From Monocercomonoides exilis PA203 (lineage: Eukaryota; Protista; Preaxostyla): 64,000 nucleotides of DNA. Below the pieces are notes generated by a model. It was given only the letters and a program-made list of their open reading frames with translations, was not told the origin of the DNA and made no database searches. Where the stretch lies: NCBI GenBank assembly GCA_001643675.2, contig LSRY02000051.1:558001-622000 (forward strand). Reading direction: 5' to 3'. Made by a program: the position numbers and the translations under genes. This document shows positions 18,579 through 36,862 of this stretch, piece by piece (positions within the stretch are counted from its first letter, which is position 1; every line of letters starts with the position of its first letter).

Positions 18579-18992
18579 ATTTCGATATGAAAACAAGTAA
18601 TTATTTTTTTGATTAATTTTTTGGATGATACAGATATGATGCTGTGAAGTTGTTCGATTTTCTCCATTTTTTTGCACTTCATAAGTTTTGCAGCATTATT
18701 ATGTATCCTCGTAACCAGGAAAAAATCAATCATTTTTTGTTGGCATTTTTCTTGATGTTTTTCAAAAACAAATTTTAACAACAATAAAAGAGTGTTTTTT
18801 CTTCCCCAATTTGTTATTTTTCGTGATTATTATATGCACTCAAGTTTAAATGGATTATTTTTCATTTATCAAACGTATATTATATTCGAAATATTCTTTA
18901 GCAGAATAATATAATTTTATTCATATCTATAAAGTATAATGGTGCATTTCAGTTTCTTTTTTTATTTTTTCAGTCAAGTTTAGCATCTATTG

Positions 18993-20483
18993 ATGGCTAC
19001 TCCATCAGATTCTGGACCTTATGAATATGATTTAATTGTGATTGGAGGAGGTAGCGGAGGAGTTGCTTGCGCTAAGGCTGCTGGTGATGCAGGAGCAAAA
19101 GTTCTTTGTTTTGATTATGTGACTCCCTCTCCACGTGGTACATCTTGGGGATTGGGAGGAACATGTGTTAATGTTGGCTGCATTCCCAAGAAGCTGATGC
19201 ACAGAGCCGCAGCAATCGGTGGAGATATTGCAGATGCACCTTCTTTTGGATGGGAAGGTGTTGACCGTAAAGCAGCAAAAATTAACTGGTCAGAGCTCGT
19301 ACAACGTGTGCAAAACCATGTTCGCAGATTGAGTTTTGGCTATAGAGGAGAACTTAGGTCCAAAGGTGTAACATATATTCCAGCCATTGCATCATTCAAA
19401 GATCCTCACACTATTGCTTATAAACAAAGAGGTGAAGAGAAAACAGTTACAGGGAAATACATTGTCATCGCATGCGGTGGACGACCAACATATCCTGATG
19501 TTCCTGGAGCAAAAGAATACTGTATTACGTCTGATGATCTGTTTTCATTATCCACAGAACCAGGGAAAGTTTTATGTGTTGGAGCTTCATACGTTTCATT
19601 GGAATGTGCAGGATTTCTCACTGAACTCGGATTCGATACAACTGTGATGGTACGATCGATTTTGTTGAGAGGATTCGATCAGGAGATAGCAGAGAAAGTT
19701 GGAGCATATATGGAAGAGCACGGAACAAAATTCCAGAAAGAGCAGACACCAGTTGCATTTGCTAAGAAAGAAGATGGAAAAATTATTGTAAAATCAACAG
19801 GAAAACTTGGAGACAAAGAGGAAGAATTTGACACAGTGCTTCTTGCAACTGGAAGAACACCTGTTTCTGAAGCACTGAATCTTGAAGCTGCTGGAGTGAA
19901 AATGGACGCACGAACAAAGAAAATACCAGTTGATAAAACGGCAGCAACAAATGTGCCGTTCATCTACTGCATTGGTGATGCTCAGCTAGGAGCACCAGAG
20001 CTGACACCAACTGCAATTCTGAGTGGAAAGATTCTTGCGAAGCGTTTGTTTGGAGGAAGCCTGGAGGAGATGGTATACACAAATGTTCCAACAGCAGTAT
20101 TTACACCACTCGAATACGGGTCAATTGGCTTGCCCGAAGAGAATGCGAAGGCCATTGTGGGTGAAAGCAACGTGGTTGTCTATCACGGCTCGTTCACTCC
20201 GCTTGAGTGGGCAATCAGCGACGAGCGGAGCCATGAGGGAGAAGGATATGTGAAGGTTATATGCGACAAGACCCGCGAAGAGACTGTCATGGGACTGCAC
20301 TATTTGGGTCCAAATGCAGCTGAGGTGATCAACGGCTGGGCTCCATCGCTGCGGCTTGGCGTGAGGAAGAGAGATTTGGAGCGTGTGGTGGGGATCCATC
20401 CGTGCTGTGCTGAAGAAATAAACAATGTCTCTGTGATAAAGGGATCTGGCGTTTCAGAGGCAAAAGGTGGCTGCTGAGGATAA
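18993..20483 (+). CDS. TXNRD: High-molecular-weight thioredoxin reductase, selenoprotein (C-terminal Gly-Cys-Sec-Gly)
   Basis: GGGSGG FAD motif, CVNVGC redox centre, GASYVSLECAGFL, GIHPCCAEE; 3' end GGC TGC TGA GGA TAA with TGA at 20475-20477. Confidence 0.95.
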
Positions 20484-20484
20484 A

Positions 20485-20674
20485 GGCGCGAGGTTAACAC
20501 TTCTGAAGAGGAGAGAGGAGGAGAGTAAGAAAGAGTGTGTGTAGAGTTAGATGGACTTAGAAAGACAGAGGAATCTTAAAGAATTGGTGGGGAAAATCGT
20601 TTCCGTTGATTCACTGATTTCTTTGTTTTTCTATGTTCTGGTGATTGGAGAGATTGACAGAAGTACCTCGCGCC
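20485..20674 (+). promoter_or_regulatory. Long RNA hairpin starting 2 nt after the TrxR stop codon (structured 3' UTR, candidate Sec-recoding element)
   Basis: 20485-20494 pairs with 20665-20674 (10 bp WC); 20499-20505 with 20658-20664 (7 bp); 20558-20575 with 20616-20633 (18 bp, 3 G-U); 20581-20593 with 20600-20612 (13 bp, AAAUCG loop). Confidence 0.65.
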
Positions 20675-21472
20675 CGATGACCTATTTACAAATTGATGCT
20701 GCTGTGATCTTTTTCGGACAAAATAAATCTTTTTTTATCTTTCTGATAGAATATTTGCGCATTGCATCTCAGCATTTCTGATGAGGATGGCCTAAACACA
20801 ATTTTTGGTGCGACCAATGCAGCGTGGAGACTCAACAAAAGTCACATGCTGTTCCTCTGATTCTCTTCCTCTGCGTTCCACTGCCCTGCTCCTCAGCCAC
20901 GTGCAATTCCTCTCACAGCAGCAGTGGCGGCAGGCGTGTTATGCAGACAGAGTGCGTTGCATTGAATAACTTGAATTGTTGTGTGCAATTGATAAAAGAA
21001 CGGAATCGTGAAAAGAGGTGGAATGTACTTGTCACATTTACTTTATTCTTTTTTCCGTAGTTTTTTTATCATTCTGGAGGAAATGAGCATTTGCATGCTT
21101 TTCTTCATTTCCAGAATTGCATTCAGCATTCATTCATGCTTTCGCAGCAGAGACGTTGCGTAATTGTTTTATCAGATTTGTAGATCGTCTTTATTTCAAT
21201 TATATTTTATCATTTGTTCAATTTGCTTTTCAATAACGAAATCGTTCAACTTTCCACAATTAACAAGAATCATTTTTATTTTTTTTTTTCATATTTTGGT
21301 TTATGAAGGAGTAAATTATAAATGGCTGCAAAACTAATAAGTTATTCCTAAAATTGAAAATTTTTATTTGTATATAAATGAACATTCGAATATCAATTAA
21401 AAAAAGGTAGTCAAAACGAAATAACAAAGAAATGAAAATATGAATATTTCATTATAAGTTCAGATCAGATCA

Positions 21473-36448: not shown

Positions 36449-36862
36449 TATATAGTTTGTGTTAATAATGGTGGACACTTTCAATAACTGTGGACAGTTG
36501 CATTATCTCAACAACTGTTGATCGTTGCATTTTAACAATAAACCCAATTATTCCCTCAATGAATATGAACTTATAAAACATGCAGAAATGAAACAACTTT
36601 CTCTGCAGAATTTTGAAAAACACTTTTTTAATTTTCGGAGAAACTATGTGAATTTTATTTCTTAGGGTTTCTCCGAAAATTAAAAAAGTGTTTTTCAAAA
36701 TTCTGCAGAGAAAGTTGTTTCATTTCTGCATGTTTTATAAGTTCATATTCATTGAGGGAATAATTGGGTTTATTGTTAAAATGCAACGATCAACAGTTGT
36801 TGAGATAATGCAACTGTCCACAGTTATTGAAAGTGTCCACCATTATTAACACAAACTATATA
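36449..36862. mobile_element. Perfect long inverted repeat (196-bp arms, 22-nt spacer); probable foldback/MITE-like element flanked by TA
   Basis: 36449-36644 is the exact reverse complement of 36667-36862; ends TATATAGTTTGTG...CACAAACTATATA. Confidence 0.8.

Follow-up and report, generated by a model that had tools for sequence, protein, structure and literature searches.

We identified a gene for a thioredoxin reductase (TrxR) of the animal type in a 64,000-nucleotide stretch of Monocercomonoides exilis PA203 (contig LSRY02000051.1, positions 558,001 to 622,000 of the forward strand; this whole stretch is hereafter the window, and coordinates are positions in it unless a locus or contig is named). 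This gene and a second copy, likewise expressed, very probably encode a cytosolic, high-molecular-weight (high-Mr) TrxR in which the penultimate UGA codon (20475-77) stands for selenocysteine (Sec), giving a Gly-Cys-Sec-Gly tail. The Sec reading is supported by the conservation of UGA-Gly-stop, the alternation of Sec and Cys codons among relatives, a complete Sec machinery, two selenoprotein W (SelW) genes in the same genome, and transcription with a long 3′ untranslated region (3′UTR). M. exilis is an oxymonad, a gut protist free of mitochondria; to our knowledge it is the only eukaryote known to lack them. Since its Sec machinery has been published, a selenoprotein in this organism was largely to be expected, and the UGA-recoding system itself is not new.

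A thioredoxin reductase gene with an in-frame UGA

The open frame at 18990..20477 (forward strand) is uninterrupted over 495 amino acids counted from a TTG, with an ATG at 18993, and its 3′ end reads GGT (20466-68), GGC (20469-71), TGC (20472-74), and TGA (20475-77), followed in frame by GGA (20478-80) and TAA (20481-83). The tail is then Gly-Gly-Cys-[TGA]-Gly-stop (G-G-C-U-G-stop with Sec at the TGA); the probability that a Gly codon and a stop should stand right behind a terminator by chance is about 0.3% (4/64 x 3/64). Pfam searches revealed PF07992 (Pyr_redox_2, 190.5 bits), PF00070, and PF02852 (Pyr_redox_dim, 82.5 bits), that is, the FAD/NADPH fold together with the dimerisation domain. 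The best solved relatives in PDB are rat and human TrxR1 (E ~1e-157; ~55% identity to TrxR1 over 486 residues in the PDB alignment), and the top PDB matches are all TrxR or thioredoxin-glutathione reductase (TGR); the alignment to rat TrxR1 extends from residue 10 to the last residue, with the final Cys on Cys497 of the 499-residue GCUG enzyme. NCBIfam model TIGR01438 (TGR) scored 631.7 bits against a cut-off of 475.85 and was matched at positions 1-483 of 485, ending two short, while the second-ranked family, glutathione reductase, scored 403 bits, under its own cut-off. Both GGTCVNVGCIPKK, which holds the CVNVGC active site, and GIHPCCAEE (the HPxxAE motif) can be read in the translation and line up with rat TrxR1, and the C-terminal extension Gly-Cys-Sec/Cys-Gly is present as GGC TGC TGA GGA TAA. 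Because the Pfam domains, the match to rat and human TrxR1, the TIGR01438 score, and the CVNVGC and HPxxAE motifs all point the same way, the protein is, by every sequence feature tested, an animal-type, high-Mr TrxR.

The original prediction, made from the letters of this stretch, had stated that the frame halts at TGA 20475-20477 before GGA TAA, that this is the C-terminal redox motif of animal-type high-Mr TrxR, and that automated annotation would drop two residues. All of this holds: its coordinates (20466-20483) are exact in the sequence, the family score and the alignment ending at rat Cys497 bear out the motif, and the database protein (P0001, 494 aa, 100% identical over 494 aa) has the C-terminus ...KGGC.

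Further copies and relatives of the gene show how this codon behaves. The paralog (locus L046 on contig C23, G000:C23:565585-570066) is 98% identical and has the same TGC TGA GGA TAA. The closest TGA-type relatives, two GC-rich transcripts from two unrelated public runs (L022 and L023), both end in GGA GGA TGC TGA GGG TAA, and the Gly codon behind the TGA therefore varies synonymously (GGA vs. GGG); a Gly that is kept with a different third base behind a supposed stop is the signature of a translated codon. Cys-type members of the clade (L048-L050) have TGC TGC GGT TAA (Blattamonas nauphoetae), TGC TGC GGA TAA (L049), and TGC TGT GGG TAA (L050). The UGA adjoins the Cys aligned to rat Cys497, i.e., it lies at the Sec498 position. 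The check on orthologs suggested alongside the original prediction thus turned out in its favor, with TGA in two relatives (L022, L023) and TGC or TGT in B. nauphoetae and two others, the classical pairing of Sec and Cys. The B. nauphoetae TrxR (P0005) is the closest named relative (57% identity, same clade, same tail length); it and the unnamed clade members P0002 and P0004 differ from the M. exilis protein in having Cys (TGC/TGT) at the TGA position, in a tail Ala-Cys-Cys-Gly, and in short 3′UTRs whose post-stop structure is not significant. The Sec synthesis pathway has been reported in M. exilis, Paratrimastix, and Trimastix, and is not named for Cys-type oxymonads such as Blattamonas (PMC10703272), which fits the Cys codon in Blattamonas.

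A quick maximum-likelihood tree placed the six proteins in one clade (SH-like approximate likelihood ratio test, SH-aLRT, 98; inner supports 89-94), in which the M. exilis protein is nested among Cys forms, outside of which the two GC-rich Sec forms branch. This would suggest that the replacement of Sec by Cys happened more than once in the clade, a suggestion that we keep tentative because the tree is a quick one with inner supports of 89-94.

The conservation bears directly on the simplest alternative, that translation truly terminates at the TGA, leaving an enzyme with a Gly-Gly-Cys end and an untranslated GGA TAA that resembles a Sec tail by chance or as a relic of a Sec-using ancestor. 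We consider this very unlikely. Four sequences keep TGA-GGN-TAA, with a synonymous GGA/GGG change behind the supposed stop, and the Cys-type relatives have a second Cys exactly at the TGA position, which implies a need for this position; the genome moreover maintains a complete Sec system and two further selenoprotein genes. It is true that TGA is an ordinary stop in the standard code of this genome (11 of 13 long open frames of the window end in TGA, by a crude count), that the public protein model stops there, and that no canonical selenocysteine insertion sequence (SECIS) was detected in the TrxR 3′UTR. A terminator would, however, leave the enzyme with a single-Cys tail, and in high-Mr TrxR a tail with one Cys is unable to make the C-terminal redox pair.

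Transcription was assessed from assembled contigs of four metatranscriptome runs of a single study; such contigs give no ends, strand, or rare isoforms. They tile the gene from ~19018 to 21289 and then stop, with no joint (intron) reported, and over 20475-77 they list no difference at the UGA codon, which is thus unedited. Variants specific to the paralog also occur in the RNA contigs, so both TrxR copies are expressed. An assembly or sequencing error at the TGA, or a copy that is a pseudogene, is accordingly the least probable explanation, with a likelihood close to nil: the assembly is probably from long reads, and the gene is duplicated with copy boundaries that match the transcript, but the same TGA is found in both copies, the independent RNA contigs list no difference at the codon and carry the variants of both copies, and over 494 codons the frame has no other interruption.

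As regards the duplication itself, the two copies are ~98% identical across window 18920-21230, a span that begins ~70 nt before the ATG and reaches almost to the poly(A) region, and they cannot be aligned outside it. An intronless gene whose copy limits fall at the transcribed span fits a retro-copy, or a gene conversion confined to what is transcribed. Within the 3′UTR, at about window 20722-20734, a 75-nt indel further distinguishes the two.

Table 1. Features of the TrxR gene and its 3′UTR in the window.
Feature	Position	Strand	Details and evidence
TrxR coding sequence, read through the UGA	18993..20483	+	494 residues, Sec, Gly, TAA; intronless; open reading frame, Pfam, PDB, NCBIfam, P0001
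In-frame TGA, proposed Sec codon	20475..20477	+	residue 495 from the ATG; GGA and TAA behind; conservation, Cys-type orthologs, RNA contigs
3′UTR	20484..21290	+	~800 nt; RNA contigs tile 19018..21289; paralog similarity decays after ~21230
Post-stop (proximal) hairpin	20485..20674	+	perfect 10-bp GC-rich closing stem 20485-94/20665-74; inner hairpin ~20559-20632
SECIS candidate, non-canonical	20778..20860	+	CUGA 20778-81; helix II 20783-91 with 20848-57 (one bulge); AAA 20794-96; UGA 20858-60; apical part ~50 nt

Selenocysteine machinery and selenoprotein W genes

We found all six components of a Sec-decoding system in the M. exilis genome (82.3-Mb assembly, 101 contigs): tRNA-Sec, PSTK, SepSecS, SPS/SelD, eEFSec, and SBP2, the last as an SBP2-like protein. 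The tRNA-Sec gene (L001:1501-1587; G000:C30:184971-185057) scored 69.9 bits with the Rfam model against a cut-off of 47; it has the anticodon UCA in the loop CUUCAAA, a 6-bp D-stem, a long variable arm, and a 4-bp T-stem, with a TATA-like motif ~30 nt upstream and a T-run downstream. ARAGORN called no tRNA at this locus, where the Rfam model does call one. PSTK is one of three loci of the KTI12 family, and its best solved relative is an archaeal L-seryl-tRNA(Sec) kinase (NCBIfam selen_PSTK_euk, E 1e-20). A SepSecS gene is present, as are eEFSec, including its eukaryote-specific domains III and IV, and SelD, whose active site is of the Cys type (GCACK), so that SelD is not itself a selenoprotein. 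The SBP2-like protein (614 residues) contains an L7Ae domain; among solved structures, residues 661-738 of human SBP2 come closest to it (E 2.8e-4), and of the six assignments that of SBP2 is the weakest. The SBP2-like gene occurs at two loci of contig C16 (L038, G000:C16:456366; L039, G000:C16:589675), in opposite orientation and with identical scores and open-frame lengths.

The genome search that had been proposed as a check was therefore positive for every component, and the claim that this protist has a UGA-recoding system is upheld, though the machinery had already been published (PMC6759080; PMC10703272). These two papers report Sec enzymes and "SelB" for M. exilis, and their main texts name no selenoprotein, TrxR, or SECIS; our literature search found no paper that names TrxR as an M. 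exilis selenoprotein.

Two SelW/Rdx genes (L040:1333-1705 and L041:1367-1680) carry the motifs C-T-V-U and C-A-S-U. Both have an intron exactly before the TGA, and exon 2 opens with the TGA, i.e., CxxU is assembled by splicing. Each gene is then followed by AUGA, a 10-bp helix, AAA, a small GNRA-capped stem, and UGA or CGA, and both elements are textbook type-II SECIS; AAAGCGUAAG, with a GUAA tetraloop of the GNRA type, is common to their apical loops, and Rfam SECIS_1 aligns end to end to one of them when it is searched alone (15.5 bits). The SelW mRNAs have no significant hairpin after the UGA (z -1.9 and -0.75). Among anaerobic metamonads, the diplomonad Spironucleus likewise has tRNA-Sec, SelB, and SelD, with no canonical SECIS detectable by software (PMC2874811). 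Spironucleus differs in that UGA is its sole stop and its reported selenoprotein is SelW, not high-Mr TrxR (PMC2874811), and the SECIS of the M. exilis SelW genes are clearly canonical by eye.

The 3′UTR: a SECIS candidate and a large post-stop hairpin

We searched the TrxR 3′UTR for a SECIS, the one cis element on which Sec decoding in eukaryotes depends, with a bulge-tolerant scanner of our own (NUGA, helix II of 9-13 nt with <=2 irregularities, unpaired AA, and 3′ GA), which as a control recovered both SelW SECIS as top hits with scores of 19 and 18; an earlier gap-free SECIS scan had found nothing useful. The best hit in the TrxR UTR was the candidate at 20778-20860 (score 17; Table 1), with AAA 12 nt after the core; the length of its helix II and the spacing of its AAA are right for a SECIS. 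Its core and helix are unchanged in the paralog, where T20782C kills an overlapping ATGA and spares the CUGA. The truncated 3′ end of the relative L023 has AUGA a GAGGUGGUC, compared with CUGA u GAGGAUGGC in M. exilis. In the other TGA-type relative, L022, the unconstrained fold is a clean type-II SECIS with a GUGA core ~238 nt after the UGA (z -2.7), so the clade does employ a kink-turn SECIS at a comparable distance.

Several points weigh against the Sec reading, and against this element in particular. Rfam SECIS_1 gave no match in the TrxR 3′UTR, searched in one pass and as three short pieces, in which an element like that of SelW (15.5 bits) should have appeared; over the whole genome the same model found nothing, which is uninformative, since a clear SelW SECIS of 15.5 bits was missed in a ~6.4-kb scan of the two loci. 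The score of the candidate was reached by 8 of 300 dinucleotide shuffles of the UTR, a modest support. It has C instead of A/G before the UGA of its core (no precedent for a C at this place was found in our literature search), helix I is weak, the apical domain of ~50 nt is unusually large and probably branched, and an unconstrained fold pairs the AAA. Beyond the SECIS, positions 5, 6, and 8 of the 9-bp acceptor stem of the tRNA-Sec are not Watson-Crick pairs, despite the high score of the gene, and the RNA support is restricted to the assembled contigs of one study. As far as sequence can tell, then, the gene appears to have every attribute of a selenoprotein gene except an unambiguous SECIS and proof at the protein level, and we put the chances that 20778-20860 is a functional SECIS at about even.

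Other candidate signals in this UTR were discarded. An ATGA at 20677-80 with a CUGA at 20743-46 (box C/D-like, with weak matches to snoRNA models) has no helix II, and in the paralog the 75-nt insertion separates its two motifs. As for the overlapping ATGA at 20781-84, the paralog has lost it and it is out of register with the 3′ GA, and CUGA was preferred as the core. The SelW loop AAAGCGUAAG is of no use as a probe, since it follows ATGA at only three genome sites (the two SelW genes included) and is missing from the TrxR UTR, and a SECIS covariance model built from one SelW element was too sequence-specific (7.9 bits for the other SelW SECIS; MAFFT misaligned the two). A 34-nt UTR intron was likewise unsupported: the RNA contigs are unspliced across the region with no joint, and a minor spliced form is possible. 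Late in the 3′UTR there is also a perfect local hairpin (window 21070-21117, GGAAAUGA with UCAUUUCC), nearly unchanged in the paralog, with a fully paired AUGA and no likeness to a SECIS.

The most conspicuous structure of the 3′UTR is a 190-nt hairpin that starts one base past the TAA, 10 nt from the U of the UGA and so within the ~10 nt allowed for a proximal stem-loop (Table 1). The 223-nt stretch tested has a minimum free energy of -65.4 kcal/mol (z -3.1; matched by 0 of 200 shuffles), the paralog hairpin has z -3.9, and the 200 nt from 20478 are among the lowest 1.7% of folding energies in 3190 windows of the 64-kb region. Comparison of the two copies over 59 consensus pairs revealed 49 unchanged pairs, 9 with a one-sided change that keeps the pairing, 1 double compensatory change, and 0 broken pairs; the consensus fold was fitted to both copies, which favours retained pairing. 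The inner hairpin (window 20557-20636) is a hot spot of divergence between the copies, with 18 differences in 80 columns vs. 0-4 per 40 in most of the remaining 3′UTR, and its pairs are all kept.

Both TGA-type relatives have a strong stem in the same place, starting 9 and 11 nt after the U of the UGA, in unrelated sequences. The L022 hairpin has z -3.9 to -4.2; the sequence of L023 is very GC-rich, and when it is shuffled for comparison its hairpin does not reach significance. The Cys-type orthologs show no folding advantage over shuffled sequence (z +0.2 and +0.3). One of them (L049:1681-1733) has a 9-bp hairpin, GAAUGAAAG with CUUUCAUUC, ~13 nt after the stop, which is not significant against shuffles and may be a post-stop relic. 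We also considered the large hairpin itself as the SECIS, and rejected it: its K-turn-like motifs are unconvincing by eye, and a UGA/GA core is missing from both the L022 and the L023 hairpin.

A hairpin so close to the UGA raises one further alternative, that the codon is read mainly as a standard amino acid (Cys carried by tRNA-Sec at scarce selenium, or near-cognate Trp, Cys, or Arg) and the hairpin is a general stimulator of read-through. Stop-adjacent structures do stimulate read-through, and the selenocysteine redefinition element (SRE) of SELENON promotes it at other stop codons too (PMC8704476; PMC6844570); the hairpin is strong and stands 7 nt after the UGA, and the SECIS is non-canonical. 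We nevertheless judge this explanation to be even less likely than a true terminator, given that the genome encodes the Sec-specific factors eEFSec and an SBP2-like protein as well as tRNA-Sec, and that lineages reported to be without the Sec pathway (PMC10703272) swapped the codon to TGC instead of retaining TGA, which argues for a dependence of the TGA genes on that pathway.

Elsewhere in the window, at ~36520-36800, the 200-nt folds of -135 and -129.5 kcal/mol on the two strands are by far the most stable ones; the stretch is presumably a long inverted repeat and is very AT-rich (GC 0.26).

Post-stop stem-loops in other thioredoxin reductases

For comparison we used 80 TrxR loci from a metagenome scan, all of <=53% identity and hence from other eukaryotes; the loci returned included no further members of the oxymonad clade. 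The C-U-G-stop motif was found in 69 of them. Over the 90 nt from the UGA, 67 of these had a mean z of about -3.1, with 66-70% below -2, compared with a mean near 0 and 3% below -2 in coding controls 200 and 300 nt upstream, and means of -0.85 and -0.68 in windows 100 and 200 nt downstream. The post-stop segments are diverse (63 of 67 distinct at 80% identity), and the structure of the proximal stem-loop is conserved without its sequence in the paralog pairs, in L022/L023, and in the 67 environmental loci. Our scanner found SECIS candidates with a canonical core in 36 of 65 environmental loci, 92-457 nt after the UGA (median 161) and beyond the hairpin; Rfam at its gathering threshold found a SECIS in 0 of 20 environmental loci.

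Three environmental Cys-type genes had z values of +0.66, -0.36, and -1.64, and none of the 5 Cys-type controls over 90-nt windows fell below -2. The association of the post-stop hairpin with Sec-type and not Cys-type TrxR is suggestive only, because the negatives are few and the loci phylogenetically non-independent. A group of four loci (L089, L091, L110, and L127) with a C-U-A or C-U-S tail, for which the post-stop z was mostly not significant, ends in Cys-TGA-Ala/Ser-TGA rather than Cys-TGA-Gly-stop, and L089, L110, and L127 share much of their downstream sequence (TGA GCT TGA AC... GGC-ACTGGTTGA).

Stem-loops of this kind have precedents. Six of eight human selenoproteins with a C-terminal Sec, including TR1, can form a stem-loop right after the stop; the function of those of TR1 and SelK was reported as unknown, and deletion of the proximal stem-loop (PSL) of human TR1 did not raise Sec insertion (PMC6844570). 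Like the M. exilis hairpin, the PSLs of SelS, SelK, and TR1 (Cockman et al., 2019, PMC6844570) and the redefinition elements of SELENON and SELENOT are stable stem-loops within a few nt of the UGA or stop, and the PSLs accompany a Sec near the C-terminus and are conserved as structure, not sequence. In human mRNAs the PSLs are short (UTR nt 3-36 in SelS) and have been reported to be of unknown or indirect function, whereas the M. exilis element is 190 nt long and multi-branched and comes from a protist. New beyond PMC6844570 are the breadth across protists, the contrast with the Cys forms, and the unusual size in M. exilis; the idea is not new in kind. Mammalian TXNRD1 (rat 1H6V, human 2J3N/3QFA) has the domain architecture and CVNVGC in common with the M. 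exilis protein, as well as Gly-Cys-Sec-Gly from TGC TGA GGN stop; the M. exilis gene differs in being intronless, in a 3′UTR without a SECIS that Rfam recognises, in a candidate core of CUGA rather than A/GUGA, and in a post-stop hairpin that is far larger (190 nt).

If the M. exilis enzyme works as its family does, electrons would pass from NADPH to FAD, to the CVNVGC disulfide, to a Cys-Sec selenenylsulfide that the partner subunit carries on its flexible tail, and from there to thioredoxin. Similarly, Sec-tRNA(Sec) would be made by SerRS, PSTK, and SepSecS, with selenophosphate from SelD, and delivered by eEFSec, recruited by the SBP2-like protein on a kink-turn SECIS in the 3′UTR, for which the non-canonical element at 20778-20860, 303 nt downstream of the UGA, is the likeliest place. 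The hairpin is a separate element, of the structurally conserved "proximal stem-loop" kind, that most likely modulates termination vs. Sec insertion, or the spacing to the SECIS. One may speculate that it meets the mRNA entry channel when the UGA is in the A site, and there slows the ribosome or hinders the release factor; an equally speculative alternative is that by folding 190 nt away it brings the SECIS nearer.

A much broader hypothesis, which we regard as possible and on present comparisons rather unlikely, is that the post-stop stem-loop is an ancient, required partner of the penultimate Sec codon in TrxR across eukaryotes, kept with Sec and lost with Cys, and that in M. exilis it has grown to 190 nt and acts with a SECIS that has a CUGA core and a three-way apical part. 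If this were true, a second recoding signal would be present in TrxR mRNAs at a fixed position, serving either to suppress termination or to position the SECIS complex. The 3′UTR, with its non-canonical SECIS candidate and very large post-stop hairpin, is thus of more interest than the coding finding; our survey suggests that this class of hairpin is widespread in Sec-type TrxR mRNAs, where it is functionally unexplained.

For M. exilis itself, the Sec reading would correct a gene model, as the public protein misses two residues of the catalytic tail, and would name concrete clients for the selenium machinery reported in this organism. The Sec form that stands among Cys forms in the quick tree may offer a compact natural system for the replacement of Sec by Cys, and the main thiol-redox enzyme of a microaerophile would depend on selenium.

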